NCBI GenBank assembly: GCA_024704765.1
Contig: JAKMXF010000277.1
Coordinates: 372,001-436,000 of the forward strand
Direction: 5' to 3'
DNA length: 64,000 nucleotides
Source of the DNA: Oopsacas minuta
Taxonomy: Eukaryota > Animalia > Porifera
This document shows positions 1,758 to 27,828 of this stretch, one piece after another (positions within the stretch are counted from its first letter, which is position 1; each line of letters opens with the position of its first letter). Position numbers and translations under genes: made by a program. The notes below the pieces were generated by a model, which did not search any database, had not been told where the DNA came from, and was given only the letters and a program-made list of their open reading frames with translations.

Positions 1758-1944
1758 ATCTAGAAATTATAACTATGTGTTAATTATGCACCATTTAATC
1801 TGTTCAATAAATCAAATTTCTATCAAATTTCTATATCTCTATAAGGCATAGTCTCCTGAAGGAACAAGAAAACGATTCAAGAAAATACCAATAATCATGC
1901 TTTCAAAAGAATGCTGATAGTATATCCATAGAAAAAGTATAAGA

Positions 1945-3220: not shown

Positions 3221-3228
3221 TATAAATA
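3221..3228 (+). promoter_or_regulatory. Candidate TATA box (TATAAATA) of LRR copy A
   Basis: About 58 nt upstream of the ATG at 3286; same spacing at 19420-19427 (copy B, minus); also at 27307-27314; TACAAATA at 24217-24224 (copy D). Confidence 0.5.
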
Positions 3229-3285
3229 GGGATATCACTATAGCTAATATATATTGAATATTTGAATTGAAGCAAGATATTAACA

Positions 3286-4763
3286 ATGAAAAGTATAGCT
3301 AGTAGTATCTTAGTATGTGTTGGATTGTTTGTTGTGTATTTGATAGTAGTTGAGGCTGTCTGTTGGATAAATTGCCCAACTGAATCAATTGGCTCATTAG
3401 AGCCCTTCTGTTACCTGAATGATGATGGAAGTTCTAGGCGTTGTTGGATTTTAGTGTATACATTTGAGTTAAATGGACTGACTAATGATTGGACTAAAAT
3501 GAAGCTCGTTATAAATGTAACAGATCGTATCAACTATATTGGGATCTATTCACGCTTGTCAGATTATCAGTTAGAAATAAATGCTTATCGTCAATTTAAT
3601 AATATATTATCTTTCGTATCACGTGATAATAATCACATAGTATCACTATCTTTACTTGCCTCGCTTCCAAATCTTGTACAATTTCATATGTACGATGGAA
3701 ACTTCTATCATTTTCCTATATTTTCACTTTTCAACAAACAACTATCTCGTCTCCATCTATATTCTTTCGGGATTCGATCAAATGTCCCAGTAATTAGAGG
3801 CAGGTTTGTGAGTGAATTACCTAATCTAGAATATGTTTACCTCGATTCTATGAATATGTTAGTGGCAACTGAAAATATATTCTCAGGTCTCACTGCTCTT
3901 ACTAGATTGTATATTAGGAATTTGCAACTAAGAAATCCAATCAGAACACTATCTCCACTCGTTAGGCTGAAAGAATTGAATATTCATTACGCAGGTTTAT
4001 CTGAAATAGATTTTCTAAAGCAAAGTCCCTCGCTATACCAGTTAACCAGGATTAGTTTCTGGAATAATACTATTCAGTCATTTAACAGTGATATCTTCTC
4101 TGATTATACTCAATTAGAGAGTCTAGGATTGCGCGTAAACTCCATTACTATTGTAAACAGAACAAACTTTACTAAATTGTCCAATCTAGGTGAAATAAGT
4201 CATGATAACAATCAAATATCAACAGTTCCTGAAGACACTTTCAGAGATATGCCTCAACTTCGAATAGTTAAATTATCTGACAATCCAATCACAACTATTT
4301 CTAGCAAAGTATTCGAGCATCTGTCTAACATTGGAACAGTGCATTTTTGAACAACCCATTTCATTGTGACTGTAGGTTAGAATGGATGTCAATTGTATCT
4401 CAGAAATACGATATATGTTTCGGAAATCCATCCTGCAATACTCCACAAGAACATAGAGGTAAATCAGTATTGTTACCATCTCTCTACACAAACTGTACTA
4501 GAGAGCTATCTTATCAGTGTTTCAACAAATCAGTTAAATGTCCAAGAGGTTCTTACTGTCAGGATACACTACATAGCTATGAGTGTGTGTGTGAAGGAAA
4601 AGGAGTAGGTTTTTCCACCTCACTTAACAGCTGTATTGACTATGAGAAACTCATACAAACAACAAAACCGTTATGTGGAGAATATGTATTGGATACTAAT
4701 GGCCATTCGAACTGCATTCTATCAACCAACTCGTCCAGTACAACCTGTAACGGAAGCAGATAA
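3286..4763 (+). pseudogene. Type I secreted LRR-LRRCT-EGF protein, copy A (1-nt frameshift just before LRRCT)
   Basis: ORF 3286-4350 (signal peptide, about 10 LRRs) continues in ORF 4347-4763 (NNPFHCDC LRRCT, CFNKSVKCPRGSYC...C EGF-like). gtgcatttttgaac here versus gtatatttatcgaac in copy D. Confidence 0.88.
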
Positions 4764-7653
4764 AACTCCTACTAGTCTTCTTCTTATATAACTAGTACTT
4801 CTTCCCCTTAATCATACTTATTGTTACTATTTTATTGTTAGTTTTAGAGCTAATCAGTTCTGGTGCAATCCATTGAGTATTGATAGACTTGAATTACTAT
4901 AAGTATGATGCACGATGTGCTGATCGAGATTGGATGAATAGTTTCCTGCAAGGTATTTCAAGATTATTTGTTCGTTATTTGCTGTATATTAAGTATATAT
5001 ATTTGTTCATTATTATTCAAAATGTTAGTATTCATCAAATATTGTGGCATTTTCTCTTTTCGCCAAATATTCCATAAATATACTCAATATTACTTTGATG
5101 GAAAGTTGACCGGGCACTTCTGAACCAAAGTCAGTAGAAATGTTACTAAAGAGTATAATAAGAGAATTTGTATGCATTGGGCATAATTGCCCCAACCATG
5201 GCAGAGGATGCTAACCTATTTATGTCTTATCCCTACACGGAGCACAAATGTTCCATGGACATTGGTCAAAATCCCTGTAAACTCTAAAACGTTTTTCTGG
5301 CTCGCTGAGCTCGCTCAAAAACATTACAGCGTTTATTATACCACCTCCTGAGGCAATATCTAGAAATGTAACATTTGGTTGATCATTATTGAAGATAAAT
5401 TCCTAAACAAAAGAAACTTTAACTACTTTCGCAGAGCTGGTATTAACCAGACCACTTCAAGATCCGTGCTGCCGCGCCTGTACAATACGAATATACAAAA
5501 TATCCATTAGGATTAGTCCTGGTAAAGTAGGTCCCTGTACGCATTTTCTAGGATCCTAGGAAGTAGGTTCCCGTTAGATACTGTAAGCCACAGTTCGATT
5601 TTCAGTCTGAACAAGATGAGTCACAGAGGCAATATCTTAAATTTAGTAAGAAATCACCTAAATGAAAAATGTAGGAAATCTTAAAATTGGGTGAATATGG
5701 CAGAAATGTGCACTTGGTAGGTCCTCTGGCCCGCCCTAAATTTCCGGGAGCCCGGGTGGTTTACGATATCTATGCTGAGAAATGAGAACAATAAGTCAAC
5801 CATTTTATTACTGAGCCACGATATCCTATGTAAAATTGAATACAATTTAGCAATATACTCAAAATACTATCTCCACCTGTTAGGCTGAAGGCATTAATAT
5901 TGACAGGTATTTTGCGCTATTTTCTACAACAAATACGCAATTGCAACTCTCTGAGAGCTTTTCCTTTGAGAGATCAGCAATATTAAATATCGGTAGTGTT
6001 ACTGTCAATTATACTCGATATAATGTTGTTCATGATGTTGCAAGAAGACTTCAAACTCTCAACTCAACTGCAATCATATTAGGGCTAACTAAAGATAGTT
6101 TCGCTCTCACTAGTGAATTTGATAATCGAACTTATACCATTACACATGCTCAATATATTAGCGAGCCGTTTTATTTTGCCTATTATACTATAGTATAGTG
6201 GCCCAGTATTGAATGGTTGGCTATACTATTTTGTTTTTCTCCGAGAAAGCCCTGCAGCCAAAACTGGATAGAATTAAGGTGATATATGGTGTGAGAACTA
6301 TTGAAGATATTCGTCGGATGTGCTTCTCCCCTTGCTAATCAATCGGACACCAGGTGCCACTATTTCACACTGGTCAAACTTTTGTCTGGCCTGTAGCAAA
6401 AAATTATGAAAGGAAAGGTGCTATATTTTCACACTTTCGAAAGAGAAAATTCTACACCTTCATACTCTTCTAAAATTTTACATATTGGTTATAGTTTTTG
6501 CTGAAAGTAAATGAAAAATATTCATTCTATAGCACTATGTCATTGGTAATAATTCTATTGTTATTAGATGTAAATATTTATTAGTTTGGATTCATTGAAT
6601 ATCCAAGTTTAAATAATTGATTTTATGACTCATCATCTCTCAAGAATAATATTAATCTGGATATTTATACAAATACTTATCTAATCAAATGAATACAATG
6701 GTTCAATCAGATCGTAAAACTTATTTGAAGATATTTCCATCTTCAATCATTCCTAAACATCCTATAGCACTCATGGAAGAGAAAGTCTAACTACTCAATC
6801 TTACCTGCCAGCCGTGCAGGGATTTTGCCCATTGGTAGTTCTGTATAGGCGTACAGGGAGTTAGTACAAATGTACTAGGATTTATGGTTGAGACTAATTG
6901 TGAGTCTAATAATACATATACATGTACATTTAGTTATGCAAATTAAGTTCTTACTCAACAGTACAAGGATTCACTGAACAGTCTGTGATTCATAACCCTT
7001 TTGGTTGAAACAAGATTCCATACGTTATTGAGGAAACATATTCATTGTAATTGGCATGAACTGTTCCGTATCAAACCTGATTCGGACAGACAAAATCCCA
7101 CAGTACACAAAATATATGTTAGCATGTAGTGTAATTGATCTTTGGTGTAAGACTACGGAACTCAGCGAGCCAGGAACATTTTTGGGGTTGAAAAATGGGG
7201 CTCTGTACATGGATATGACACAAATAGGTTAACATTCTCTGCCATGGTTGGGGAAATTATGCCCAATGAATACACATTCTGTGATTATACTCTTTAGTAA
7301 CATTTCTGCTGATTTTGGTTCAGAAGTACCCCAGTCAACTTTCCATCAAAATTGTAGTAAGTATATACATGTAATATTTGACGAAAAGAGAAAATGCCAC
7401 ATAAATTTGATGAATAACTGACATTTTGAATAACAATGAACAAATATATACTTAATTGACCACAAATAACGAACAAATAATCTTGAAATACCTTGCAGGA
7501 AACTATTCATCCAATCTCGATCAGCACATCGTGCATCATACTTATAGTAATTCAAGTCTATCAATACTCAATAGTTTGCACCAGAACTGATTAGCTCTAA
7601 AACTAACAATAAAATGTGTAACAACAAGTATGATTAAGGGAAAGAAGTACTAG

Positions 7654-8067
7654 TTACATAGGAGGAAGACTAGAAGGAGTTTTATCTGCTTCCGTTACAG
7701 GTTGTACTGGACAACTTATACTGGATAACTTGGTTGATGGAATGCAGTTCGAATAACCATTAGTATCCAACACGAATTCCTCACAGTTGGCTACTTCTAT
7801 GAGTTTCTCATAGTCAATGCAGCTGTTAAGTGAGCTGGAGAAAATTACTCCTTTTCCTTCACACACACACACTCATAGCTATGTAGTGTATCCTGACAGT
7901 AAGAACCGACAATCGGTAGAACCTTCATCATCATTCAGGTAACAGAAGGGCTCTAATGAACCAATTGACTCAGTTGGGCAATTTATCCAACAGACAGCCT
8001 CAACTACTATCAAATACACAACAAACAATCCAACACATGCTAAGATACTACTAGCTATACTCTTCAT
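7654..8067 (-). pseudogene. Type I LRR copy C with the whole LRR solenoid and LRRCT deleted
   Basis: Signal peptide and N-cap to ...GSTDCR join directly to GSYCQDTLHSYECV at about 7907 (GG microhomology), out of frame; tail ...CPVQPVTEADKTPSSLPPM retained. Confidence 0.85.
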
Positions 8068-8837
8068 TGTTGATATCTTGCTTCAATTATTTATATTATA
8101 TTATGAATATAGTATTTTAAATTCACAATGGATAATTATAAATATGTATTTCTCCGATTGTATAACCTTTGAGTAATCAAAGAAGATTGTTCCAAACAGC
8201 AAAAGGCGATAATTCAATACCCTGATTCCGAATTTTACGCTCTGAATTTGTACCTATCAAATTTCCTCCAGTATTGCCTTCTATTAATATTATTTAGTCA
8301 ATCAATAATTACTGCAAACAAGTTGAACTTTATATGGACTGGATGTTCATAGCAAATTGTAAATATATTGTTTGATGGATTTATTTCCTCGCTCCGCTCG
8401 GAAAATATAAAATTGCAACCTGTGTGAGCAGCTTAGTCTATTCAATATAGTTTTGATGGACCATGAAAAATATACAATGAGCGATAATAGCAGCTCTGGC
8501 TCTGTACCGGCAAACAAACGTTTGTCTGATAATCTCTGCAATTGAAGGACCTGTTATTCTGGGGAAAATATTTCTGCTGTAACCTCAAAATATATATAAT
8601 AATGTTTATAATAAGGCAAAAAACTCCCTTGCATCAAGAAACTTTTAAATTTCGCTCTGCTTGAGTTATCATAGTAAAAATATTAAGATACAGATCAGTT
8701 ACTTCATTTTAATGAAATCAAAAGAATATGGAATGACAAAAATGAAACAATAGTGGATTTTGAGGTAGATTTCCTCAGAAAGAATACATACATATTAAAT
8801 ACAATTCGTGACATTGAATATTAACTATAATTGCCAG

Positions 8838-11800
8838 ACTCAATTCAATTAATTGGAGAGAACACAACAACCAAAACGATAGATCTAGCATTCCATGTAA
8901 AACGACCTTGGAATCGTAGAGGTACCTTTGATGAGTATTTAATTGAATGTAAGGGTGATCTCGGAGAAGTTCAAGTGGTCTCAATCAGAAATGAAGGTCC
9001 TAAAGCTATGAATCTTATAGCTAATTGGTATCTTGATTTCACTAATGTGATTAATTTCCAAACAATGTCAGAACTGACATTCTCATTCTATCATTGGATA
9101 GGAGAAGGAGATCATTTCAGTAATCCAGCTGATAGTAGTGAGTAATTGTGATAAGATATAATGTATTAAGGTATTTTCTGTCAGAAATGTTCCTTTAGGT
9201 GTAGGGAATAGTGCCAACAATTGGTCAAGTTATTGGACTACTATCCTACTACGTATTATTCCTGTTTAACCAAATGAAAGCATTAGTTTGTATATCGAAA
9301 CACTGATATATGAAGCCCTTCAAACGTTACTTAACGCAAAATTCCCTAATCTTTGAACCTCCCCTCCCTGTGTCACGCTTTTTCACTTTGGAATACAAAA
9401 AGATTGGGGATGTCACACTTCGCATACCACCCGCTTCCCTTGTAGCGTTAAGTAATGTACGAAATTACAAGCAGAAATACAGCCAAACCTGCTTAAGCGT
9501 TATACAGAAGTGGCCTCTGTATAACGGTGTGGTTGGTTATGATTAGGCTGATAATCTCATATAATGTAAAATAGTGAATGAGGAATTCAAAACAGGTGAA
9601 TTTTGTTTCAAGTTGATCCAATATTCGCAAACTGTTACTGAAAATGATAGCGCAAGTCAAACAGGAAATTTCAACGTAGCACTCGATGAATTCCTCGAGT
9701 TTGAATAATATATAGTTTTCAAACATTTCTTACGAATTCAATTCCTCCATATCAACAGTTCAAAGTCTTCCTTTTTAAGCTCAATAATTTGTAATATTTC
9801 AACTTTTCCACATGCATGCATTGTACAATGACACGGTGAGCATTCAAATTTTCCAATTGAATAAGATTTAAAAAATTATATTACACTTGGTGAATTTAGA
9901 AATCTGTATTCAATACGGAGCGATGTTACGATCACATACAAAGAGTCAATTATAGCCGGTGAGTATAGCTAGGTAAAAGGCCAACTTCTCTATAGCGGCC
10001 ATCTGTATAGGACGACCACTTTTGACCACTGTAATTGGATAAATGGTACATATATACACTGCCCTCAATTCTAGGTACTATCAATCAGATTGAACATTAT
10101 CCAAACCTAATGAAGCAGAGAATAACACAAATAGAAGATAGAAAGAAAGTGTATATCTGGCAAACATTTCCAGATATTGGTCTGCCCTCTGCAATTGATG
10201 AAAATTTCTATGTTCCAAAGGATGAGGAATTTGAAAAAGCAAAAATTCAAGATAGTAAATCAAATAAATTTATGGGAATGGTATTCGGTCTAAGAAGTGA
10301 CGTAACTAATATCGTAAAGATAAAACTTTCAGGTAACTATGTATGTTCAGTTCATACAACCTAATCACTTTCATTATGAAGACTTACTACACATAAATAT
10401 TAGGATCACTTTGCTGGAGGTCAGTAAATATATCGTTAATTTTGAGTGACAACATGTGAATAATTCTCAGGAAAGTGCTCTCATAATTGCCGAAGATAAC
10501 CTGTATGCACGCTCGTATATGAATACTAATCACCATATATACCGCGCTAAGTTGATTTTCAACTTCTGGATGAAGAATACTTAACAATAGTTATGTTGTT
10601 TTTTTCCAGATCTTTTTGACACAACTATTCGGAATGACCAACCATTGAGAAGCCTACGCAGGGCTGAAAAAGTTGCAAATTCCATGATGGATGTAAGAAT
10701 TCATCAACACATGGAAATCCTGACTTAGATGATACAATACTCTACGCTTGTGAGGCAAACCGTTGGATAAGTGACATCGAGTTTGGAAGGCAATTGTTGA
10801 ATGGAGTTAATTGTGTATTAGTTACTTTGTGTACTGAATTACCAGACAACTTCCCAGTGAAAAATGAGATGGTGTGTAATAGTTTGTGTAGAGGACTGAC
10901 TTTGGAAGAGGAGATGAAGGTAAAAACGCGCTTATCATAATGACTAGTATTTTTGCTGAGCAATGAATTATGTGAATTAACGATCTACCAAAAGATGATG
11001 ATAATTACGTCATATTTTCTCTCGTGTATGAACTATTTTTCATGACTTGAGCTTGAACGAGCCAGGTTCACAAATATCGCAGTATGCTTCTAGTGTTTTT
11101 ACATATTTCCTTTGTACAATTTGTCTAGGATCACAACATATACTTTTGTGACTTGAGTGAGATAATGGATGGATTACAGTGTAAGGAAGGAACTCACTGT
11201 GCTGCTCCGATCTGTCTCCTCTATGTAACGCCTGCTAACGTGACCATTCCTATTGCAATACTGCTGAAGAGAATACCTGGTGATGATAATCCTATTTTCT
11301 TACCATCAGAAAATTGGTTAGACTGGTTAATGGCGAAGATGTATTTTGCTAGTGCAAGCACTCAGGTGATTTATTGATTCTAGTTGTGTATTACTGAATA
11401 ATGCTGTTTAGTCATGTATGGCTACATTAGGGCGAGATTAATAGTCGACAATCTGAAAATTTTAATGGAATGTAGCATTGAGCAGTGTTGAGTGATTTCG
11501 TCCATTCAATTGATATCTGAAAACCTATGAAATGATATGAATTATAAAGTATACAAAAATTTGAATCTCAATACATTTGTTTGTAAATGTGTAATACATA
11601 CGTGTATTATCCATATCCCGCGACACCTCTTGTAACGCTACTGAGAACTTCCGAAGTGGGACTTCTCAATTTAGTATGCTTCCAAAATATGGATGCAATA
11701 AGGATCTGTTTCTATGATCGGTTGTTTGGTGGAATATTATTGGACATCAATTGTATATTAATCTTAACTTTTATAGCATCAGCAAGTCGCAACTCACTTC

Positions 11801-13080
11801 GTAATGTGTCATACTGCGATGGAAGCATATGGAGTTGCTACAATGAGGACTCTACCAGATTGTCATCCTGTGTATAAACTACTCAGACCTGCATTCCGTT
11901 ACACAATCTCTATAAATGTTGTGGGTAGGAAAACGCTCGCCAATCCTGGTGGAATAATGGACAAATTGTTCTCAATTGGTGGTGAAGATGACAGATCTGG
12001 GAAAAACGAGCTGATTGTTAGAACTAACGAGAAATATAATGTACACTGGAGTAACATTAAGCGTAATTTGAGAGAGAGACGTGTTGATAACTCTGATAAA
12101 CTACCAAACTATTACTACAGAGATGATGGAGTTAGAATCTGGGATGCAATGGAATGTTTTGTTAGATCTATGCTAGGCCTGTTCTACACAGATGATACAG
12201 AAGTTGAGAATGATAGCGAGCTTAGAGATTGGACTAATGAGATACATAGTTATGCATTTCCAGCATTCCATGGCGCAATACAGGGTCGTGGGTTCCCTCA
12301 ACAAATTCTGACAAAAAATGAATTGGTAGAATATTGTACACTCATAATGTTCACTGGTTCAGTACAACATTCTGCTGTCAACTTCGGTCAGTTGCAGATG
12401 TATGGATTCGTACTAAATTCTCCAACGACTATCAGAGTACCACTTCCTACACAGAAGGGATCATTCATGAAAAATGACATCTTGAGAGCTCTACCGACAA
12501 TGACTACTGTAGTATTGGCTGCAATAACTGTGAATACACTTTCATATCACAGTATTGATGAGGTAAATAATGATAATCATTCTGTAGTAAAATGTAGTTT
12601 ACATGAACATGGATACAAGAAAACTATTGTTGTATGTAGCTAAAATTTAGTTTTGAAATGTCCAAAGTGTGAATTTCAAGTCTCCCATCCGGTAAATACT
12701 TTCAAGTTTTTCATTCAAATTGAGGCATGTCTATATTTGTGTAGACCAGTGCCTAATGAATACAATACAAAGTAGGCTGCTCCTTATTGTACTGTCGATC
12801 ACTAGAGGTTTGTATGTATAATTGTCGCTTTCATTTGTTTTTTATGAATTTATCTATTCTCATATTTATAATATTCGTTTACTTATTTTCTTGTGTAAAA
12901 ATATATCTCGGAGGTTATCCAACGATGTGGTTTACAGGGGACAAAGAGAGAGCTTGTGTAACAGATTACCAAGAAGCTCTAGCTGTTATCAATGCTGATA
13001 TAATTGAGAGGAACAAGAAACTAGAAATACCGTACAAATATATCATGCCACAGCGTTGTCCTAACAGCATTACCATCTAA
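8838..13080 (+). CDS. PLAT-domain animal-type lipoxygenase, multi-exon, possibly disrupted; first exon not resolved
   Basis: Exons about 8838-9137 (PLAT), 10075-10332, 10610-10919, 11129-11365, 11777-12562, ~12901-13080. Motifs: W..D.EFGRQLLNG.N, WLMAK, HFVMCH iron ligands, QHSAVNFGQ, C-terminal PNSITI. The 10610-10919 exon is out of phase and the last exon lacks an in-phase AG. Confidence 0.88.
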
Positions 13081-13879
13081 TGATGTGAATTACTATTTCT
13101 TGTGTGTGCTCTTTCTATTAGTATTAGAATCAGTTGTCTGTCTCTAGAATGTAATTCCTTGTATTCGAAATTCCTTGAATAATTTGTAATTCAATCTATG
13201 ATTTGTATTTAAAATCATAATTTACTGACATCCAAATGTTATCACAAAGTTCAAATTTGCAGTAAATTTCGATGGAAGTATATTTGAGGTGTTAAGTGAT
13301 AAGAAATTCGTAATTTGTTATAAATCTGAGATTGTTGTACAATTGATTATTACATAATCAGGATATTCCTGCGTTAACGTTACCGCTTTTCTTAAATCTG
13401 TTACAGAATTATGCAAAAAAAGTACCAAAAAGTATCGTAAAGAATTGAGCTGTAAATATCCAAATTATGTCTAGAAAACATCAAGCCAGATCAAGCTATA
13501 GTCCTAGACGTAGCCAGGGCTGAAAATCTAAACAGGAAACATATATTTTAACTACACAGCAGAAGACAACTGGCTACTTTTGGACACCTAAATTTGACTT
13601 CACCATAATACTAAAGTATATCCTGGGTGGTATGGGGTAAGCTTTGACCACCCAGGCTCAGACTCATGAGGCAATGACGGTGTAAAATTTCCAGGGGGCA
13701 GGACGAGGAACGAGGTGTTTCCATGGGTTTAGAAGGGATGTCCAGTGTCGGATCTCTCAATTCTAATTGGATATAATCATACAGCTGTAACTAGAGGTTT
13801 GGGTGAGCTGTAAGATTTCCAGTGGAGTCGGGGCCTAGCCCCTGGACAACAAGCTAAAACTGCTACCACGTAATTATCT

Positions 13880-14195
13880 TTCTACTATCAAGTAGGTTCG
13901 AATCTTGAAAAAATTTCTCATAACTGCGAAATACACATTTGGTTTGGAATATTTCCGATTGACTTTGTGCTTTGCGTATATGAGTTAGATGGATGCATAT
14001 GCTCAGGGTAATACTCGAAAATAATACTTAGGTCCGTAGATCAATACGTACAAGAGATATTCCTATTATTAGGCGAGATTAAATAATATTGAGGGTAGAT
14101 GCGAGCCGAAATTACAGTTATCAATTTGAGTCAAGGAGGCATACCAGGGCACGAGTTTACCAGGGGGGCATTGCGACCCCATGGCGATGTCCCTG
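13880..14195 (+). repeat. Dispersed non-autonomous element (~320 bp)
   Basis: Aligns by eye to 57765-58117 (direct) and to 51800-51990 plus 52270-52345 (reverse); ends ggcga(t/c)gtcc(c)tg. Confidence 0.7.
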
Positions 14196-15238
14196 ATTGT
14201 AATGGATTCCTTATATCAGGAAAACCTAGGAAGCTAGGAAATTCTAATTAGCAATTAATAAGATGATAAATAACTCAGGCCTTATCTCTATAGTTAACTA
14301 TTTCATTCGAGTTCATCACTCGCACTTTACTCCTTTCTCTCACTAACCTAAATTATTACCGGCTCTCGGACACATTGCTTTGGGCCCCCAACTGACCCCG
14401 AGCCCTGGTAATTTGGTGCCAGACTCCCCTCTCTTGTGGGTCCTGCGTATATTGTATAATGGTAGTAAATTTTAACACCCAGTACTCAAGTTTAAATCTC
14501 ACTTTGACAGGAGTGTCTTGAAATTTATAGATGAAAATTGGAATAAGTGTGCCGCAGTTCGAAAAGGTCGAGAAATACTGCAGTATACTATCGTATAGCC
14601 CTCACAGGAAAATATCAGAGAAATTTACTACACACACTTGTGTATAGTACGTTTTCTCGTGGATGCGTTCCAACTAAGAGTTGCCTGTTGCAGCGGCGCC
14701 AAAAGAGGATGGCTAGGGTGGGTTTTACCCATTCTGATTGTTCATTGCGGAGATAAATGTTGGTTGTCACTTGTCAAGTACCCTATTTGTGTTTTCTAAA
14801 TATAAGTGTTATAATTTAATTAGTATTATCTATTGAGGTCATGTGGCAACTGTTATCGAATATAACTAGAGCACTTACATTGGTTTCTTTGAGCATTCAT
14901 ATTTATACTTGTAGATAATTATTCATAGTTGTAATAAGTTTTGTCTCAGGTTCGAAATTCTATTAGAAATTTAATTGAGCAGAGGGAATCAACTTTCGCA
15001 ATTCCAGAAATATAGAAAACTTCTTGCATATTAAGACATGTTAGTATCATTTATATTATAGATTAGATTTGTTAGTAAACACAATAAATTGTATCCAAAA
15101 TTCGCTAAATATTTGAGGTTTACATGTGTTTAACCCACCCTGGCCAAATTGAGTTCTGGCGCCTATGGCCTGTTGTATAGTCAGTAAAGTAAGTAAATGC
15201 AAGATATATTATAAATCTAAAAATTGCTACAAACTTAC

Positions 15239-15519
15239 TGAAAGAATCCTGATCAGTCACGTCATACACTATATTAACTCCTTGTACTCCTCTAAAGACT
15301 AAATGTAGAGTAGTCCTGAACCTGCCATATAAAGATGTATCAAATATCTGTATCTTAATAACTTAACTCACTTAACTCTGTGCATTCTAATGTCCGCTAC
15401 AATAATCATTCGATAGTTGTCATCATATAGTTCTTCAAAACAGTGAAGGAGACTTAATTTTCCAACACATGGTCCCCGATTATGTTAAGTCTGATTTCGT
15501 AGTCATATTCTGCATTCAA
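15239..15519 (-). pseudogene. Degenerate exon 1 of type-B Rab1-like gene, no adjacent exon 2
   Basis: Homologous to 28784-29069 with the same ttca|GTAAGT donor; start reads TTG, P-loop is frameshifted, internal stops. Confidence 0.8.
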
Positions 15520-16273
15520 TTTGACTTAACCTAATCATAAGAGCTAATTCCAAATACCGCATTTGAATCGCTCGGTATGAATTGTAATTAAATAATACGC
15601 GCACCAATGTTCCTAAATTGCATTCTAGGGCAATGAACTATCACGGCACAACTGGTCCGGCTATATGGAAGGTCTCTTACCGGAAGTGCATTTATTTATT
15701 AGGCTTAAAATTTATTTATAGACACAAATAACTCAGTGGTAGTTTAGTGGGCGCCAATTCTGATCCTGAAAGATCGTTCTGCAATGGCTAATTCAGTTAT
15801 AGTACCTACGCCAACTGGCCCGGTATAACAGCCGAGATTATACCCCGTATGAAGTGGGCAAGCTCAGAACATAACCTCAGAGCGGTATGACCTGGGTTAT
15901 TCCAGAATGTACCCGAATATATTTTAGGGTTGCTACAGCGGGCCGCACCAGTTATGGTAAGTGCGGAAGAGTAAAAGCATGAGAGAATCCGAAATACTTA
16001 TAGATGAATGAAATTTTCAAAGAAATAAAATTCTACATAATTTCTGATTTCACAAACTAATAAATACAAAATTAACCATAAAAATGAGAAAATACTCACA
16101 CAAACTGTAATTTAATGACATACCTATATGTAATTATTTCTCTAATTCTTCCCAAATTAATCCCATATAATAATTCTCACAAAATAGCACATGGTATAAT
16201 CCAGTGCATATATAGAAATAGCACAATAATATACACAGAATTACTTTCTACAGTTCACATTGAGATTTCAACA

Positions 16274-17075
16274 ATGAAAGGTATTGCTAGGAATATCGTT
16301 GTGTGTGTTCGTCTGTTTGTTGTCTATTTGATAGTAGTTGAGGCAGTTTGTTGGATAAACTGTCCTACTGAATCACGTGATTTATTAGTGCCCTTCTGCT
16401 ACCTGAATGATGATGGAGGTTCCAGAACATGTAGGATAGAAGTGCATACATCTGATTTAAATGGACTGACTATCCAGAGATGGCATATAGTCAAACTCTT
16501 TATACATGTAACAGATCGAATCATTACTGTTAACATCTTTATCACACTTGTCAGATTATCAGTTGGAAATTTATGCTTTGCGTCAATTAAATCAAATAAC
16601 AAGTTATATATTATACTCTAACAATCACATAGTATCGACATCACTACTTGCCTTATTTCCTAATCTTGAAACATTTCAAATGATTAATGGAAACTTCCAT
16701 CATTTCCCTACATTCTTTCTTTACAATTTTGGGGAACAAGGTTTGCTCTGTTGATAACATTAATAGTGTTTGAATGTAATATTAATCTCTTCAATTGAGT
16801 ATAATCAGATAAAATATCACACTGGTAAATGAATTAATACTATTGTAACCGAAATCAAGAAAAGATAACTGGTACAGCAATGGAGTTTGAAATACAAATT
16901 CTATGTCAGAAAAGTCTGCCTCCTGAATACTTAATGCCTTCAGCCTAACAGGTGGAGATAGTGTCTTGAGTATATTGCTAAATTGCAAATTATTAGTATC
17001 CAAACTAGTCAGGGCAGTGAGACCTGAGAATATAATATTAAAGGTTGCTAGTTCGCTCACAAAGCACCCCTGCAC
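16274..17075 (+). pseudogene. Type II LRR remnant: 5' part (+, 16274-16730) and inverted internal LRR piece (-, 16735-17075)
   Basis: ORFs 16115-16621 and 16548-16754 (frameshift between them) and 16791-17075 on the opposite strand. Confidence 0.85.
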
Positions 17076-17755
17076 AATCTGTGTTTCGTAACTAATACTC
17101 TGTACTGGTTTTACAAGATTCCATACGTTATTGAGGAAACATATTCATTGTAGTTAGCTTGAAATGTTCAGTCCCAACCTGATTCGGACGGACAAGACTC
17201 CCATTGTGCACAGATTATATGTTAGTATGTAATGTAATTTATCTTTAGCGTAAGACTAGGAGCGCAGCGAGGCAGGAAAATTGTTGAGTGTAAAAATTAG
17301 GGGCTCTGTACATGGATAAGACACAATTAGGTTAGCAATATCTGCTTGGTTGGCAGTTATGCCCAATGAATACAGATTCTGTGATTATACTCTTAAGTAA
17401 CATTTCTGCGGACTTTAGTTCAGAAGTGCCCAGGTCAATTATAAATCAAAGTATTATTGAGTATATTATATGCAAATATTTGACGAAAAGAGAAAATGCA
17501 ACATATTTTTGATGAATAACTATCATTTTGAATAACAATAAACAAATATATACTTAATTGACCACAAATAACGAACAAATAATCTTGAAATACCTTGCAA
17601 GGAAACTATTCATCCAATCTCGATCAGCACATCGTGCATCATACTTATAGTAATTCAAGTCTATCAATACTCAATGGTTTGCACCAAAACTGATTAGTTC
17701 TAAAACTAACAATAAAATAGTAACAATAAGTATGATTAAGGGGAAGAAGTATTAG

Positions 17756-19362
17756 TTATCTAGGAGGAAGACTAGCAGGAGTTTTATCTGCTTCTGTTAC
17801 AGGTTGTGCTGGAGATGTTTGTATTGGACATGTTTGTACTGGACAAGTTTGTACTGGACAAGTTTGTATTGGACACGTTTGTACTGGACAAGTTGGTGCA
17901 TGGGTAGTAACGACATTGGTTGATGGATTGCAGTTCGAATGACCATTAGTATCCAATACATAGTCTCCACATAACGGTTTTGTTGTTTGTATGAGTTTCT
18001 CATAGTCAATACAACTATTAAGTGAGGTGGAGAAAACTACTCCTTTTCCTTCACACACACACACTCATAGCTATGTAGTGTATCCTGACAGTAAGAACCT
18101 CTTGGACATTTAACTGATTTGTTGAAACACTGATAAGATTGCTCTCTAGTACAGGTTGTGTAGAGAGATGGTAACAATACTGATTTACCTTTATGTTCTG
18201 GTGGAGTATTGCAGGATGGATTTTGGAAATATATATCGTATTTCTGACTTACAATTGACATCCATTCTAACCTACAGTCACAATGAAATGGGTTGTTGGA
18301 TAAATATATTGTTTCAATGTTAGACAGATGCTCGAATACTTTGCTAGAAATAGTTGTGATTGGATTTTGATATAAATCCACTAATAGAAGTTGAGTCATA
18401 TCTCTGAATGTGTCTTCAGGAACTGTTGTTATTCGATTGTAAGCAATCTCTAGATTCTCCACATTGCCCAATTTAGTAAAGTTTGTTCTGTGTATAATAG
18501 TAATGGAGTTTGAAGACAATCCTAGACTCTCTAATTGAGTATAATCAGAGAATATTTCACTGTTAAATGAGTGAATATTATTATTCCAGAAATTAATACT
18601 GGTTAACTGGTATAGCGAGGGAGTTTGCTTTAGAAAATCTATTTCAGATAAACCTGCGTAAAGAATACTCAATTTTTTCAGCCTAACGAGTGGGGATAGT
18701 GTTCTTATTGGATTTCTTAGTTGCAAATTGATAGTATACAATCTAGTAAGAGCAGTGAGACCTGAGAATATATTTTCAGTTACCACTAACCTATACATAG
18801 AAACGAGGTAGAGAGTTTCTAGATTAGGTAATTCACTCACAAAGCTGCTTTCAATTACTTTGACATTTGATCGAACCCCAAAAGATAATAGAGCGAGAAG
18901 AGTTAGTTGTTTGTTGAAAAGTGAAAATATAGGAAAATGATTGAAGTTTCCATTGTACATATCAAAGTGTACAAGATTAGGAAGCGAGGTAAGTAAAGAT
19001 AGTGATACTATGTGATTATTAGAAAAGGATTTGAAAGTTGATATATTATTGAATTGACGATAAGCATTTATTTCTAACTGATAATATAACAAGTGTGAAT
19101 GGATCTGAATAGTATTGATACGATCTGTTACATTTATAACGAGCTTGATTCGATTCCAATTATTAGTCAGTCCATGTAACTCAGATGTATACACTTCAAT
19201 CCGACAATCCGTAGCATCCCCATCATCATTCAGGTAACAGAAGGGCTCTAATGAACCAATTGACTCATTTGGACAATTTATCCAGCAGACAGCCTCAACT
19301 ACTATCAAATACACAACAAACAATCCAACACATACTAAGATACTACTAGCTATACTCTTCAT
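17756..19362 (-). CDS. Type I secreted LRR-LRRCT-EGF protein, copy B; +2 slip in the (GT)n run truncates the EGF and tail
   Basis: 441-aa ORF 18037-19362; homologous frame resumes in 17756-18064. GT run is 13 nt (18052-18064) versus 11 nt in copies A and D. Confidence 0.9.
17817..17891 (-). repeat. 15-bp coding tandem repeat x5 encoding CP(V/I)QT
   Basis: gtttgta(c/t)tggaca(a/t/c) units read directly; one degenerate unit at 17802-17816. Confidence 0.9.
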
Positions 19363-19965
19363 TGTTGATATCTTGCTTTAGATCAAATACTCAATATATA
19401 CTAGCTATAGTGATATCCCTATTTATAAGGTATTTCTCCATATACTTTGGAGATATTTAGACACTAATTGTGGTAGTATTATGTAATATGAGAATAGATT
19501 GAGTGAAGAATCGTTTACATATATTGTATGTGAATTTATCTCTTCAATATTACAGGCAAAACATAGACAATTCAGTGGAATATGCATTACAGGTAAATAC
19601 CCAATGCTCATAATTTATCAGCTGTGATTGTATCTCGAGGCGCGAAGTGCATGTATATCCCGTAGCGTAGAGAGCTGTTTCTACTTAAGTGGGCCATAGA
19701 TCACAATTGGTGATCCATATAACTCATCTGAGAATTATGAACCATCGAGCGACCCCAGAGATGCCCACTCTCGCGGCCTACCCACGTGAGTCTCACGCGT
19801 CAAATTTTTGTATCCAAATAAGACTGTAATTATCCGAGTTATACTGTATTCAGTATAAGGTAGAGAGATAATACATTTAATATATACACAATTACATATA
19901 AACATTTAGGAATACTTATCTAGTAAACTACATCATTAATACCCAGTATATTCAGATTATTTAAG

Positions 19966-21565
19966 TTAACAACAACGACAACAATTAGTGCTTCTTGTAC
20001 CATGAAAGGATCTTGGATTTAAGAGAATCAGTTTATCATGGGTAATATCACCAGTATTGTACCTCTCCTCGTTTTCAAATAAATTCCTTTTAATATCACA
20101 AACAATGGTCAAAAAGGCTTGCTCTACATTAATAGCACACTTTGCACTTGTCTCTATGAAGTTAATCTTCATTTCATCAGCAAACTCTTTAGCTGTAGAG
20201 TAGTCTACTATCTTCTGACTTGTCATATCACATTTATTGCCTACCAACAACTTACATGCATTTGGAATGCAGTAAGTTTCAATTTCCTGTAGCCATCGCT
20301 TAATATTACCTAGAAATTTGAAAAATACTCAATTGAAAATACATTAAACAATAAATTCAAGGATAATACATTCATTATTCAAACTTTTCCAAACTATTGG
20401 AGACTGAAAAGTATATTATTCAATCACAACTAACAAACTTAATGGTATATAAGATTTTCCAAAAAGGAAGCCTTTGGCCAGTGCTGCCAAGTGAATTCAG
20501 AAAATCATTGAGATTGACAAAAAAATTTACGCAGAAACCAAATTCTTTACGGAGCATTTATAATTCCTTATTGAGCCTAACAGGTCTTAATTTACTTTTA
20601 CAAATGCCATTAGCTAACAACTTTTATTATTAATCATTAATATATGTAGATATATGCACGCTTTCGCGTTTGTAAACAATAAATTTTAATCACTATCAGC
20701 ATGCAACAAACTATCAAACTACTATTGTATATGGTCGTACATACTTTGAGAAAATAACTCACACATTTTCGAGGTAGGTACAAACGTTGAGGAATTTTGA
20801 ATATTGACCTTTATCGTTAGCAAAAGTATTACACGTACAGGTAATTCGATAGAAATATATAGAAATAAGTCTTCATACGTAGATACGTAGATAACAGTCA
20901 AATTTACATAGTCTACGTAAATTACGGAGATTTGCAGCACTTCCTTTGCCTGACACGAAGTGTTAGAAAGCGCGCACCGCAAGCAAGCGAAGTGGCTTGT
21001 TATTCTAGAATAGGAAATTTCCTATCGCCGATAAATCGATAAATTAGTGTCAACAAGTGTCAAATCTAACTTGAATTTTTCCAAATATTACAAGATCTGT
21101 TCCCAAACATCTTAGTAACGGAGGAATGTATGAACTTTCATTATATCAACATTTACCATATTCCTAGACAAAATGGACAAATCGAAGACTCATTCTGCTT
21201 AGTTAATGATAACAGGCTATGATTCATATTGTAGTAACATAGAGCACATTATTGTTTGCCACAAACTTACTGAAAGTATCTTGATCAGTGACGTCATACA
21301 CCATCATGATACCATGCGCACCTCTGAAAGATCTTTTCAATACACCCAGAGAATTCCCGAACCTCAAAGAAATGAATGTATCCCATATCTGTAGCTTGAT
21401 AGTTTTACCATCTACATTAACAGTGTGGAATCTAAAGTCCACAGGACACAGTCTAAAGTACTCAGTGTATGAATCTTCCACAAACCTTAAAAGGAGATTG
21501 GACTTTCCGACTCTTGAATCACCGACTATGAGAAGTTTGAATAGGTAGTCACAGTCTACACTCAT
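19966..21565 (-). CDS. Divergent Rab1-like GTPase, type A, copy 1 (212 aa; exons 21271-21565 and 19966-20309)
   Basis: Phase-1 GT-AG intron, open frame. G1 GDSRVGKS, G3 WDTFIS, G4 NKCD, G5 ETSAK, C-terminal CCRCC; Rab1-like YLFKLL and RGAHGI motifs. Confidence 0.9.
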
Positions 21566-22227
21566 ATTGACCTGAACAAAAAATGGCTTCGCTATAATCC
21601 ATGATGGTTTATTAGACGCAAAATACAACAATAATTTCGGGAATCAGGGCTGGATTTGGTTATGCTAGGCCTGGGTGCAGGGTTGTTTAATTTAAATCAA
21701 AATCCGAGTTTTATCAAAATATCTTATTAAAATTCAATATTTTGATGTTTTTATTATTTTCTCAAGCTGATTATGTCCATTCTGATATTATTATGTATAC
21801 CTATCGAAAATCTATTCATTTGTACAGTCAGGATCGCTTATTGTGACCCCTTCATAATGACTTGGCTTAATACAAATCTTATGTAAGCCGAAGAATTGGG
21901 AATTGAGGGGGTTGTTCATATTAAGCCGGATGGTTCAGTCAGCTACCATACAAAATCCGATTAAAATCAAAAAATCCGATTTTTTTGATTTTGTTAAAAA
22001 AATCATGATTTTTATCAACCCTGCCTGGGTGTATAGATTGATGAAACTATCAAAAAAGTATTCTACATTATTTAGGAAGTCACATACTCAGATAACAAAA
22101 TTAAATACTAAATTGATATACATAATCATATGAAAACTCCTGAAATTTGATATATACAGATAAGTATTAAAGAATACATATCAAGTAAGAGCATCATGAA
22201 TAGCACAAAATATTCAGATTATATACG

Positions 22228-22574
22228 TTAACAACAATGACAAAAACTGATGTGTATCCTGCCGCTAACGGAAGAGCCTGGATTTAAGAGAATCCGTTTT
22301 TCATGCGTAATATCACCAGTATTGCTATTCTCCTCGTTTTCAAATAAATTCCTTTTAATATCACAAACAATGGTCAAAAAGGCTTGCTCTACATTAATAG
22401 CACACTTTGCACTTGTCTCTATGAAGTTAATCTTCATTTCATCAGCAAACTCTTTAGCTGTAGAGTAGTCTACTATCTTCTGACTTGTCATATCACATTT
22501 ATTGCCTGCCAACAACTTGCATGCATTTGGAATGCAGTAAGTTTCAATTTCCTGTAGCCATTGCTTAACATTAC
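22228..22574 (-). other. Intact orphan Rab exon 2 (tail ...HISFCHCC) with no adjacent exon 1
   Basis: AG acceptor at 22575-22576, open frame to the stop; upstream intron replaced by the hairpin repeat and LRR remnant. Confidence 0.8.
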
Positions 22575-22589
22575 CTAGAAATTTGATTT

Positions 22590-22755
22590 CTGGCTGCCAA
22601 AAAACTGGTCCCGCACCATTTTTGCAGGCAAATCTGGTCGGGACAGATCACTTTTAGTTGCTAAAACAAGTATCTGATTATTTTTAGCCAGCTAAAACTG
22701 GTCACCGCCACTTTTTGGGAACCAAAACCTGTCCAGGTAAAATTTTGGGCTATCT
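22590..22755. repeat. Hairpin minisatellite, second copy
   Basis: Near-identical to 1597-1757. Confidence 0.65.
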
Positions 22756-22939
22756 AGAAATTATAACTATGTGTTAATTATGCACCATTTAATCTGTTCA
22801 ATTAAATAAAATTTCTATCGAATTTCTATATCTCTATAAGACATAGTCTCCTGAAGGAACAAGAAAACGATTCAAGGAAATACCATTAATCATGCTTTCA
22901 AAAGAATCCTGATAGTATATCCATAGAAAAAGTATAAGA

Positions 22940-23606
22940 TGAATGTATTAAGAATTCAGAAGGCAGAATTATCTGACATAGAATTTGTATTTCAAACTTC
23001 ATGGCTGGATAAGTTGTTTTTCTTGATTTCAGTTACAATAGTATTAATTCATTTCCCAGTGTGATATTTTCTCTGTTTATACTCAATTGAAGAGATTAAT
23101 ATTACATTCAAACCCCATTAATGTTATCAACAGAACAAACTTTGTAGACCAAAATTGTAAAGAAAGAATGTAGGGAAATGATTGAAGTTCCATTAATCAT
23201 TTGAAATGTTTCAAGATTAGGAAGCAAGGCAAGTAGTGATGTCGATACTATGTGATTGTTAGAGTATAATATATAACTTGTTATTTGATTTAATTGACGA
23301 AAAGCATAAATTTCCAACTGATAATCTGACAGGTGTGATAAAGATGTTAACAGTAATGATTCGATCTGTTACATGTATAAAGAGTTTGAATATATACCAT
23401 CTCTGGATAGTCAGTCCATGTAAATCAGATGTATGCACTTCTATCCTACATGTTCTAGAACCTCCATCATCATTCAGGTAGCAGAAGGGCACTAATAAAT
23501 CACGTGATTCAGTAGGACAGTTTATCCAACAAACTGCCTCAACTACTATCAAATAGACAACAAACAGACGAACACACACAACGATATTCCTAGCAATACC
23601 TTTCAT
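22940..23606 (-). pseudogene. Type II LRR remnant, third copy, two frameshifts, same inversion junction
   Basis: ORFs 23259-23606 and 23108-23317 plus the inverted piece 22940-23150. Confidence 0.85.
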
Positions 23607-24281
23607 TGTTGAAATCTCGATGTAAACTATAGAAAGTAATTCTGTGTATATTATTGTGCTATTTCTATATATGCACTGGATTATACCATGTGCTATTTTG
23701 TGAGAATTATTATATGGGATTAATTTGGGAAGAATTAGAGAAATAATTACATATAGGTATGTCGTTAAATGTATTATCTCTCTACCTTATACAAAATACA
23801 GTATAACTCGGATAGTTACAGTCTTATATAGATACAAAAAACTGATCCATGAGACTCAAGTGAGTAGGCCGTGAGATTGGGCATCTCTGGTGTCACTCGA
23901 TGGTTCATAATTCTCAGATGAGTTATATGGATCACCAATTGTGATCTATGGTCCACTAAAGTAGAAACAGCTCACTACCCTACGGGATATACATGCACTT
24001 CGCGCCTCGTAATTCACAGTAGTACTTTATCTATGAGTATTGGGCATTTAACAGTAATGCGTATTTCACTGAAGTATCTATGTTTTGTCTGTAATATTGA
24101 AGAGATAAATTCACATACAATATATGTAAATGATTCTTCACTCAATTTATTCTCATATTACATAATACTACCACAATTAGTGTCTATATATCGCTAATGT
24201 ATATCGAGAAATACATTACAAATAGGGATATCACTATAGCTAATATATATTGACTATTTGAATTAAAGCAAGATATCAACA

Positions 24282-25670
24282 ATGAAGAGTATAGCTAGTA
24301 ATATCTTAGTATGTGTTGGATTGCTTGTTGTGTATTTGATAGTAGTTGAGGCTGTTTGCTCGATAAATTGTCCAAATGAGTCAATTGGTTCATTAGAGCC
24401 CTTCTGTTACCTGAATGATGATGGAGGTTCTAGGCTTTGTGAGATTTACGTGGATACATCTGAGTTAAATGGACTGACTAATCGAAATTGGACTAAAATC
24501 AAGCTAGTTATAAATGTAACAGATCGCATCAATACTATTGAGATCCGTTCAGATTTGTCAGATTATCAGTTGGAAATAAATGCTTATCGTCAATTCAATA
24601 ATATATCAACTTTCCAATCAGGTTATAATAATCACATAGTATCACTATCTGTACTTACCTCGCTTCCTAATCTTGTACACTTTCATATGTACTATGGAAA
24701 CTTCTATCATTTTCCTGCATTTTCACTTTTCAACAAACAACTTACTTATCTCAAACTAAATTATTTCGGGATTCGATCAAATGTCAAATTTATTAGAAGG
24801 AGCTTTGTGAATGAATTACCAAATCTAGAATATCTCTACCTCTATTTTATGAATATATTAGTGGCAACTGAAAATATATTCTCAGGTCTCACTGCTCTTA
24901 CTGGTTTAAATACTGAAAATTTGCAACTAACAAATCCAATCATGACACTATCTCCACTTGTTCGGCTGAAAGCATTGAGTATTGGTTACTCAGGTTTATC
25001 TGAAATAGACTTTCTAAAGCAAACTCCCTCGCTATACCAGTTAACCAGTATTGATTTCTCGATGAATAATATTCAGTTATTTAACAGTGATGTCTTCTCT
25101 GATTATACTCAATTAGAGCGTCTAGATTTGCACTCAAACTCCATTACTATTATAAACAGAACAAACGTTAATAAATTGTCCAATCTGGATTTTCTAAATC
25201 TTGGTTACAATCAAATATCAACAGTTCCTGAAGACTCATTCAGAGATATGCCTCAACTTATAATAGTTATTTTGTATTTCAATTCAATCACAACTATTTC
25301 TAGCAAAGTATTCGAGCATCTGTCTAAGATTGAAGCAGTATATTTATCGAACAATCCATTTCATTGTGACTGTAGGTTAGAATGGATGTCAATTGTAAGT
25401 CAGAAATACTATATAGATTTCCACAATCCATCCTGCAATACTCCACCAGAACATAAAGGTAAATCGGTATTGTTACCATCTCTCTACACAAACTGTACTA
25501 GAGAGCTATCTTATCAGTGTTTCAGTAAATCAGTTAAATGTCCAAGAGGTTCTTACTGTCAGGATACACTACATAGCTATGAGTGTGTGTGTGAAGGAAA
25601 AGGAGTTGTTTTCTCCAGATCACTTAACAGCTGTATTGACTATGAGAAACTCATACAGACACAAGTATAA
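24282..25670 (+). CDS. Type I secreted LRR-LRRCT-EGF protein, copy D (462 aa; the only copy with all domains in one frame)
   Basis: Single ORF: hydrophobic signal, Cys N-cap, about 10 xLxxLxLxxN repeats, NPFHCDC LRRCT, 6-Cys EGF-like region; no TM segment. Confidence 0.93.
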   Translation: MKSIASNILVCVGLLVVYLIVVEAVCSINCPNESIGSLEPFCYLNDDGGSRLCEIYVDTSELNGLTNRNWTKIKLVINVTDRINTIEIRSDLSDYQLEINAYRQFNNISTFQSGYNNHIVSLSVLTSLPNLVHFHMYYGNFYHFPAFSLFNKQLTYLKLNYFGIRSNVKFIRRSFVNELPNLEYLYLYFMNILVATENIFSGLTALTGLNTENLQLTNPIMTLSPLVRLKALSIGYSGLSEIDFLKQTPSLYQLTSIDFSMNNIQLFNSDVFSDYTQLERLDLHSNSITIINRTNVNKLSNLDFLNLGYNQISTVPEDSFRDMPQLIIVILYFNSITTISSKVFEHLSKIEAVYLSNNPFHCDCRLEWMSIVSQKYYIDFHNPSCNTPPEHKGKSVLLPSLYTNCTRELSYQCFSKSVKCPRGSYCQDTLHSYECVCEGKGVVFSRSLNSCIDYEKLIQTQV

Positions 25671-27289
25671 CCTGTAACAGAAGCAGATAAACCTCCTGCC
25701 AGTCTTCCTCCTATATAACTAGTACTTTTTCCCCTTAATCATACTTATTGTTACCATTTTATTGTTAGTTTTAGAGCTAATCAGTTCTGGTGCAATCCAT
25801 TGAGTGTTGATAGACTTGAATTACTATAAGTATGATGCACGATGTGCTGATCGAGATTAGATGAATAGTTTCCTGCAAGGTATTTCAAGATTATTTGTTC
25901 GTTATTTGTGTTGAATTAAGTATATATTTGTTTATTGTTATTCAAAATGTTAGTTATTCGTCAAATATTTGTGGAATTTTCTCTTTTCTTCAAATATTTG
26001 CATAAATATAGTCAATACAATTTGAATGGGAAATTGTCCGTGACACATCTGAACCAAAGTCTGCAGAAATGTTACTTAAGAGTATAATCACAGAATGTGT
26101 ATTCATCGGGCATAACTGCCAACCAAGTAGAGAATGCTAACCTATTTGTGCCATATCCGTGTACAGAGCGCCCATTTTTACATCCTAACAATTTTCCTGG
26201 CTCGCTGAGCTCCCTAGTATTTCACCAAATACTAATTACACTACATACTAACATACATTTTGTGCACAGTGGGAGTTTTGCCTGTTCGAATAGGGTTTGG
26301 GACGGGACATTTCAAGATAATTTCAATGAATATAGTTCCTCAATAATGTATGGAATCTTGTAAAACCAGTACAGAGTATTAGTTACCAAACACAGATTGT
26401 ACAGAGCGCTTTGTGAGTGAGTTAGCAACCTTGAATATAATATTCTCAGGTCTCACTGCTCTGACTAGTTTGGATACGAATAATTTGCAATTTAGCAATA
26501 TACTCAAAATACTATCTCCACCTGTTAGGCTGAAGGCATTAATATTTACAGGTATTTTGCGCTATTTTCTACAATAAATGCGCAATTGTAACTCTCTGAG
26601 AGCTTTTCCTTTGAGAGATCAGCAATAGTAAATATCGGTAGTAGTATTGTCAATTATACTCGATATAATGTTGTTCATGATGTTGCAAGACTTCAAACTC
26701 TCAACTCAACTGCAATCATATTAGGGCTAACTAAAGATAGTTTCGCTCCCACTAGTGAATTTGATAATCGAACTTATACCATTACAGATGCTCAATGTAG
26801 TAGCGAGCCGTTTTACTGTGCCGATTACACTATAGTATAGTGACCCAGTATTGAATGGTTGGCTATACTATTTTGTTTTTCTCCGAGAAAGCCCTGCAGC
26901 CAAACTGGATAGAATTAAGGTGATATATGGTATGAGAACTATTGAAGATATTCGTCGGATGTGCTTCTCCCCTTTGCTAATCAATCGGACACCTAGTGCC
27001 ACTATTTCACACTGGTCAAACTTTTGTCTGGCCTGTAGCAAAAAATTATGAAAGGAAAGGTGCCCAAATTTTCACACTTTTGAAAGAGAAAAATTCTACA
27101 ACTGCATACTCTTCTAAAATTTTATATATTGGTTATAGTTTTTGCTGAAAGTAAATGAAAAATATTCATTTTATAGCACTATGTCATCAGGAATAATTCT
27201 ATTGTTATTAGATGGTAATATATATTAGTTTGGATTCATTGAATATCCAAGTTTAACAATAGCTTTAATTCAAATATTTAATTGATATT

Positions 27290-27790: not shown

Positions 27791-27828
27791 CTACATCATT
27801 AATACCCAAAATATCCAGATTATTTAAG

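Follow-up and report, generated by a model that had tools for sequence, protein, structure and literature searches.

Five copies of a sponge LRR gene and their layout

The window studied here is a stretch of 64,000 nucleotides from the glass sponge Oopsacas minuta (contig JAKMXF010000277.1, positions 372001-436000, assembly GCA_024704765.1), and positions below refer to it unless they carry an L label. It holds long copies of a gene for an apparently secreted leucine-rich repeat (LRR) protein, which an earlier note on this DNA had described as an antibody-like family, comparable to the VLRs of lampreys and hypervariable on its concave binding face. Searching the window by tblastn with copy D, which occupies 396282-397670 of the contig, located three long copies (A, B and D) together with several relic pieces. 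Two more long copies, E and F, lie ~100 kb off on the same contig. A search restricted to the N-terminal cap (N-cap) of F returned no O. minuta member besides A, B, D and E, and the long germline copies found in this species number five. A literature search found no paper describing this family, and LRR or leucine-rich proteins are nowhere mentioned in the O. minuta genome paper (PMC10280926). The copies and the conserved elements belonging to them are as follows.

3286..4791, plus strand: copy A, with signal peptide, N-cap, LRRs, LRRCT, EGF and a shortened stalk
17756..19362, minus strand: copy B, full length, with a stalk of six TCPxQ units
24282..25718, plus strand: copy D, whose open reading frame (ORF) from signal peptide to EGF is uninterrupted (24282-25670, 462 amino acids)
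L001:12378-13905: copy E, with one C too many in a run of Cs close to the signal peptide
L001:20852-22408: copy F, without defect, the sole fully intact copy, outside the window
24062..24281, plus strand: conserved 5' flank of D, with the TATAAATAGGG element
3066-3285, plus strand, and 19363-19582, minus strand: the conserved 5' flank blocks of A and B
17804..17894, minus strand: tandem repeat of 15 bp in 6.1 copies, encoding the TCPxQ units of B

All copies are single-exon genes that encode a signal peptide, a cysteine-bearing N-cap, about 14 LRRs, an LRRCT, an EGF-like module and a stalk. The N-terminal hydrophobic stretch, MKSIASSILVCVGLFVVYLIVVEA followed directly by VC, is a predicted signal peptide, with a signal-anchor as the possible alternative. 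The N-cap has four cysteines (CWINCP...EPFCYLNDDG) and matches no Pfam model; the repeats are recognised by Pfam LRR_8 (E=7.7e-30), and neither the LRRNT nor the LRRCT model of Pfam gave a match reaching the cut-off. The LRRCT motif is NPFHCDCRLEWM, of the form NPFHCDC...W, and its CDC...C...C cap (residues 361-404) is invariant across 30 homologues. In the EGF-like module the six-cysteine pattern C412-C419-C425-C434-C436-C450 is conserved and hairpins are predicted in the model; the Pfam matches there (hEGF, E=0.035; EGF_CA, E=0.37) both fall below the cut-off. A stalk rich in Thr, Pro and Cys follows, reading ...TKPLCGEYVLD.NGHSNC.PSTNVVTTHAP(TCPxQ)n...PVTEADKTPTSLPPI and then the stop codon, and its repeat copy number varies among paralogs. 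The earlier note had given the layout as a single exon running from signal peptide to EGF with no transmembrane segment; this stands as far as it goes, and the stalk completes it.

The proteins look secreted, without a membrane anchor. No hydrophobic window was found after residue 30, the maximum Kyte-Doolittle value outside the signal peptide being 1.3, and a Pfam search gave neither a TIR nor a transmembrane domain. The ORF ends after the stalk with ...PVTEADKTPTSLPPI, with no glycosylphosphatidylinositol (GPI) or other hydrophobic tail, transmembrane segment or further exon found, and a conserved 3' untranslated region (UTR) starts directly after the stop codon. An N-terminal signal, tandem LxxLxLxxNxL repeats and a cysteine-bearing LRRCT cap place the family in the extracellular capped LRR class. 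An AlphaFold2 model of F, built with 30 homologues, has a pLDDT of 84, and >90 along the solenoid, with beta-strands at motif positions 3-5 and a disordered tail (482-519). Neighbours in sequence and fold are generic (LGR4, LINGO-1, LRRC15, Slit2, NgR, LRRTM2), and the Foldseek and Atlas searches returned generic extracellular LRR matches with no special closeness to VLRs.

Diversifying selection on the predicted concave face

Copies A, B and D had been described in the earlier note as almost identical between the repeats and variable at the x positions of the strands, and every string that it quoted is present. Strand variants among the three copies read LSRLHLYS/LTLLALLS/LTYLKLNY, LKELNIHY/LKKLSILY/LKALSIGY, LGEISHDN/VENLEIAY/LDFLNLGY and LRIVKLSD/LLLVDLYQ/LIIVILYF. 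The N-cap alternates in the same manner (RRCWILVY/TDCRIEVY/RLCEIYVD), also as described, while GLSEIDFLKQ.PSLYQLT and TTISSKVFEHLS are conserved among the copies. Positions 2, 3, 5, 7 and 8 of 15 LxxLxLxx strands were fixed in advance as 75 'x' codons. Across the five copies, 60 of these 75 positions vary, compared with 68 of the remaining 230 LRR positions (odds ratio 9.5, p=1e-14); in the LRRCT and EGF together, 15 of 95 do. The variable residues are thus spread unevenly, as had been claimed, and the unevenness follows motif position: entropy across 30 family members is highest at positions 3, 5, 7 and 8 (p=1e-14). The x positions are also enriched in Tyr (13.9% vs 2.7% elsewhere) and Ser (14.4% vs 9.0%).

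Rates of nonsynonymous (dN) and synonymous (dS) substitution agree with the excess of dN over dS at concave sites that the earlier note had predicted. By the Nei-Gojobori method, dN at x codons is 0.31-0.46 and dS 0.05-0.18, giving a ratio (omega) of 2.5-8.2 in 10 out of 10 pairs (Fisher p 3e-5 to 0.015), and pairwise omega at the non-x LRR codons is 0.4-1.0; taken over the whole gene, omega is ~1. Maximum-likelihood (ML) estimates under GY94 are 5.3 for x codons, 0.67 for non-x codons and 0.82 for LRRCT plus EGF. A likelihood-ratio test rejected an omega of 1 at the x codons (2dlnL=30.8, p=3e-8). These results show strong diversifying selection on residues that the LRR motif and the strands of the model assign to the concave beta-sheet, together with a scaffold, LRRCT/EGF, promoter and 3'UTR that are conserved or homogenised.

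How the copies are related depends on the part compared. A and D lie within a 3.5-kb segmental duplication whose identity is 96-98% in the non-coding flanks, 84-90% in the LRRs and 97% in the LRRCT/EGF. Over all five copies, LRR-region identity is 86-88% in every pair, a star-like pattern, and promoter, 3'UTR and LRRCT/EGF reach 94-98%; in the alignments, the last ~220 bp before the ATG are near-invariant in the five copies, visibly above the LRR coding region, and the first ~200 bp past the stop codon are near-invariant in all. Upstream flanks pair A with D (94.5%) and E with F (96%), in conflict with the downstream flanks, which pair A with F (92.5%). All ten possible 2|3 splits of the copies have support from informative sites, and the A+D split backed by the flanks has only 2 of 55. 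Silent divergence between A and D is 11.8% in the LRRs vs 4.3% in the flank (p=5e-5). Because the flank relationships conflict, the pattern fits germline exchange between paralogs, which would homogenise flanks and C-terminal modules while selection keeps the LRR face different; a locally raised mutation rate in the LRR region would also be compatible with it.

Homologues at 35-52% identity were found only in metagenome-style assemblies of ENA, where they too form tandem arrays. These assemblies come from close relatives, probably glass sponges, because a CASP gene adjoining one array (L006:12092-13981) is 82% identical to the O. minuta CASP. The LRR family members of that locus are only 44-46% identical to those of O. 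minuta, and this difference from the CASP value gives a rough measure of the faster evolution of the family. Three assemblies provided paralogs for comparison.

ERZ25766962, five tandem paralogs: x omega 1.4-8.4, non-x omega 0.37-0.64
ERZ25069837, two divergent pairs among three paralogs: x omega 2.2-2.3, non-x omega 0.55
ERZ25072730, one old pair with saturated dS (~0.6): x omega 0.85, non-x omega 0.29

The intact paralogs of the first two show the same position-specific excess. In ERZ25069837 the near-identical pair k1-k2 has an x omega of ~1 on very few substitutions, and the saturated pair of ERZ25072730 says nothing about omega above 1.

Possible origin and role of the diversity

Why would copies with such similar flanks and C-terminal modules differ so strongly on a single face? 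We favour, at a probability of roughly 0.72, a germline, tandem and lineage-specific glass-sponge family of secreted LRR proteins that combines a diversifying concave face with exchange between paralogs and birth-and-death turnover. Unequal crossing-over or gene conversion moves sequence from copy to copy, and members are gained and lost by birth and death, which accounts for the frameshifted copies and the relics. The concave face may bind fast-varying ligands, such as microbes or conspecific tissue, and the cysteine-bearing stalk may link chains by disulfides or tether them to matrix; the diversity itself would be inherited rather than somatic. Recognition of rapidly changing ligands is probably the role to be predicted from the sequences. 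To our knowledge, immunity and self-recognition in hexactinellids are almost unexplored. The family is a concrete candidate for a fast-evolving recognition system, and it comes from an animal that is syncytial and branched early; the signature of the family, an omega of ~5 on the concave face, recurs in related species.

The relic pieces located around the long copies are listed here.

1941..2620, minus strand: relic a, with signal peptide, N-cap, ~4 LRRs and an inverted LRR piece, head-to-head with A
16263..17051, plus strand: relic c, with an inverted LRR piece at 17051-16738
22940..23617, minus strand: relic d, head-to-head with D and inside the 3.5-kb A/D duplication
7657..8088, minus strand: copy with an internal deletion, its signal peptide and the first part of its N-cap running straight into the last part of the EGF and the stalk
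26407..26556, plus strand: isolated short LRR fragment, aligning with about residues 194-238 of D

Relic c had been counted in the earlier note as a probable further copy, C, and is instead truncated. Among themselves, relics a, c and d share 92-95% identity, and with the genes ~76%; they end after about four LRRs, carry frameshifts or have lost the ATG (relic a has frameshifts and a GTG in its place), and do not differ at x positions. As donor cassettes of the VLR type they were considered and rejected, being the near-identical remains of one divergent, truncated lineage. By their sequence they are remnants that were duplicated together with the rest of the unit and do not amount to a library of cassettes.

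Several points count against the interpretation that we favour. In the assembly, frameshifts interrupt A, B and E, and D is cut short. Copy A has lost 1 bp in a T-run after 4346, with the result that its ORF terminates at 4348-4350, and 23 bp of its stalk near 4727-4733; the reading frame of copy B shifts once, where a (GT)n run within the EGF has one GT too many (18063-18064), and as assembled neither of these two copies is the sound gene that the earlier note had relied on. Copy D lacks the stalk, through a deletion after 25661, and a CAA>TAA change has made a nonsense codon at 25668-25670, beyond which the ancestral last 15 codons and stop remain, up to 25718. Since F alone is fully intact, some of the divergence may date from after the copies were inactivated. 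The frameshift indels may be real, because the assembly was made from PacBio and Illumina reads and polished with pilon (PMC10280926); all of them fall in simple repeats inside multi-copy DNA, and they stand as assembled only, the read mapping having skipped the (GT)n at 18040-18067. In O. minuta, a non-x omega of 0.4-1.0 suggests a degree of relaxed constraint, recombination breaks the single-tree assumption of the ML test, and assignment to the concave face was made from the LRR motif and the DSSP strands of the model, not from computed solvent exposure. Expression, finally, is only suggested. Read data consisted of four runs from one sample of unrecorded type, used as Logan contigs: X1 and X3 cover genes and spacers equally and are DNA-like, and X2 and X4 are patchy and RNA-like, X4 containing a GT-AG joint from 20305 to 21267 (minus strand) in a neighbouring Rab-like gene. 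The depth of X4 reaches 487-775 across the 3' end of B (17500-18099) and is 0 in the intergenic 16500-17499. As the 3'UTRs of the paralogs are nearly identical, this signal is not specific to B and shows at most that some family member is transcribed.

Could the excess at x positions reflect nothing but relaxed constraint in a decaying pseudogene cluster? Two indels in A, one each in B and E, a deletion and a nonsense codon in D, the many relics and a whole-gene omega of ~1 would all agree with decay and no functional diversification. Neutral change would, however, give an omega of ~1 throughout rather than 5.3 at x codons against 0.67 at other LRR codons; moreover, conservation is higher in LRRCT/EGF, promoter and 3'UTR than across the LRRs, no copy keeps an in-frame stop after bridging of the indels, apart from the 3'-terminal TAA of D, and the same x excess exists among intact paralogs of two other assemblies. 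We consider decay very unlikely for these reasons, and we give still less credence to a somatic origin, in which VLR-like assembly or targeted diversification would draw on the flanking LRR fragments as donors. Fragments do flank each long copy, the LRRs have diverged more at silent sites than the flanks have, and sequence in the LRR region is mosaic. Against this, the germline genes are complete and not stuffed with non-coding spacer, and the mosaicism is explained by germline exchange among five paralogs; the would-be donors a, c and d resemble each other far more than they resemble the genes (92-95% against ~76%), span only the first four or so LRRs, are frameshifted and do not vary at x.

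A further question is what the variation serves. The same evolution might accompany a job outside defence, in allorecognition, in adhesion of cells or the syncytium, or in matrix or skeleton, with co-evolution of a partner or specificity among paralogs driving the change. The closest matches are adhesion and guidance LRR proteins (LINGO-1, LRRTM2, NgR, FLRT, Slit, LGR4), with five copies a specialisation of paralogs is as plausible as the tracking of pathogens, and a membrane-tailed LRR-EGF family beside E and F could supply the partner. Omega well above 1 in several species and high pseudogene turnover speak against such a job, sustained high omega together with pseudogene turnover being more typical of conflict-driven families, yet the data at hand do not separate defence from non-defence; we judge the non-defence explanation possible and rather improbable. 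A slightly more doubtful proposal goes further in the direction of defence: the secreted LRR proteins, multimerised by their cysteine stalk, would act as humoral opsonins or agglutinins, a convergent germline counterpart of lamprey VLRB whose diversity would come from gene conversion and selection. If true, a germline-encoded counterpart of the VLRB antibodies would exist at the base of animals.

Comparison with known systems helps to place the germline family that we favour. The plant Cf-4/Cf-9 and Xa21 families and the expanded Toll-like receptor and LRR-only families of invertebrates are tandem LRR clusters under diversifying selection. Like clusters of the Cf-4/Cf-9 type, the sponge genes combine tandem paralogs and pseudogenes, exchange between paralogs, a conserved scaffold, and a birth-and-death turnover seen in frameshifted copies and relics; in both, dN/dS above 1 is confined to the exposed strand residues of xxLxLxx, with the scaffold under purifying selection. 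The sponge family differs in being another protein family, from another kingdom, in being secreted without kinase, TIR or transmembrane part, in its EGF and Cys/Pro/Thr stalk, and in having only five O. minuta copies. Toll-like receptors differ from it as well, since no transmembrane helix or TIR follows the LRRs of the sponge ORF. Slit, Nogo receptor, LINGO-1, LRRTM, LGR4/5 and ISLR2 (the last being the NCBI name on copy E) are the best matches (PDB phmmer 1e-26 to 1e-17; Foldseek E ~1e-10), and with the Slit class the family shares the NPFHCDC...W motif of the LRRCT and the order of LRRs followed by EGF, as in Slit. Identity to the Slit/LINGO-1 class is 20-30% over the repeats only, the sponge N-cap has no Pfam match, Ig, FN3, 7TM and transmembrane parts are absent from the sponge family, and those families are conserved, not hypervariable.

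The likeness to VLRs is narrower than the earlier note had supposed. Lamprey and hagfish VLRB shares with the sponge proteins an LRR horseshoe, variability on the concave face, variable positions rich in Tyr and Ser, a Thr/Pro-rich stalk after the C-terminal cap, and C-terminal cysteines that could allow multimers; VLRB forms multimers. Unlike VLRs, the sponge germline genes are complete from signal peptide to EGF and stalk, with no somatic cassette assembly indicated; besides about 14 LRRs they have an EGF, they lack a GPI or hydrophobic tail, their germline repertoire is tiny, and the similarity in sequence is that of generic LRRs only. Of the antibody-like family first proposed, the variability of the concave face survives. 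The VLR label fits this variability and the Thr/Pro stalk only; of the defining VLR traits, somatic assembly, an incomplete germline gene and a GPI tail, no sign was found, and the family leaves the origin of VLR-type adaptive immunity where it was. Among invertebrate LRR-only proteins, an amphioxus VLR-like protein and the crab 'VLR2' are proposed as VLR analogues in two reports (PMC4731796, PMC10045472); as presented there, those cases rest on structure or alternative splicing, while the sponge case rests on dN/dS between paralogs.

Gene models and neighbouring genes

Public gene models at this locus have been patched around the frameshifts and are not to be taken at face value. NCBI model P0003, for copy B, places a short 'intron' at 18053-18064 over the (GT)n run, which masks the frameshift, and model P0002, for copy E, borrows an ankyrin-like exon from 2 kb upstream (L001:10001-10336). 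In the 3'UTR of B, one base of the assembly at position 17599, within a T/C run, is absent from the contigs of all four runs and also from the other four paralogs; the extra base is either an error of assembly polishing or an effect of cross-mapped paralog contigs.

The second LRR-EGF(_CA) family, which adjoins copies E and F, has 25-28% identity with F. Its proteins end in ...CSGVNKL followed by a hydrophobic tail that resembles a GPI signal or a transmembrane segment, and they may be membrane-bound relatives of the secreted family. The remaining features of the neighbourhood include a Rab-like gene segment, whose six copies (85-92% identity) were duplicated together with the LRR units. Since X4 contains the spliced joint described above, at least one of these copies is transcribed.

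L004:12790-14199, minus strand; 14769-16181, plus strand; 20124-21407, minus strand: second LRR-EGF(_CA) family
1163-1594, 19893-20321, 22155-22586, 27756-28185, 30179-30566 and 32056-32478: Rab-like segments
11804-12643, plus strand: ORF of 279 amino acids between LRR units, matching the C-terminal half of lipoxygenase (Pfam PF00305, E=1e-44)
466-1002, minus strand: ORF resembling a helix-turn-helix transposase of the Tc1/mariner type

The lipoxygenase-like ORF is probably one exon or a fragment. The transposase-like ORF has a second copy 34 kb away, at 34424-35303, with 66% identity.

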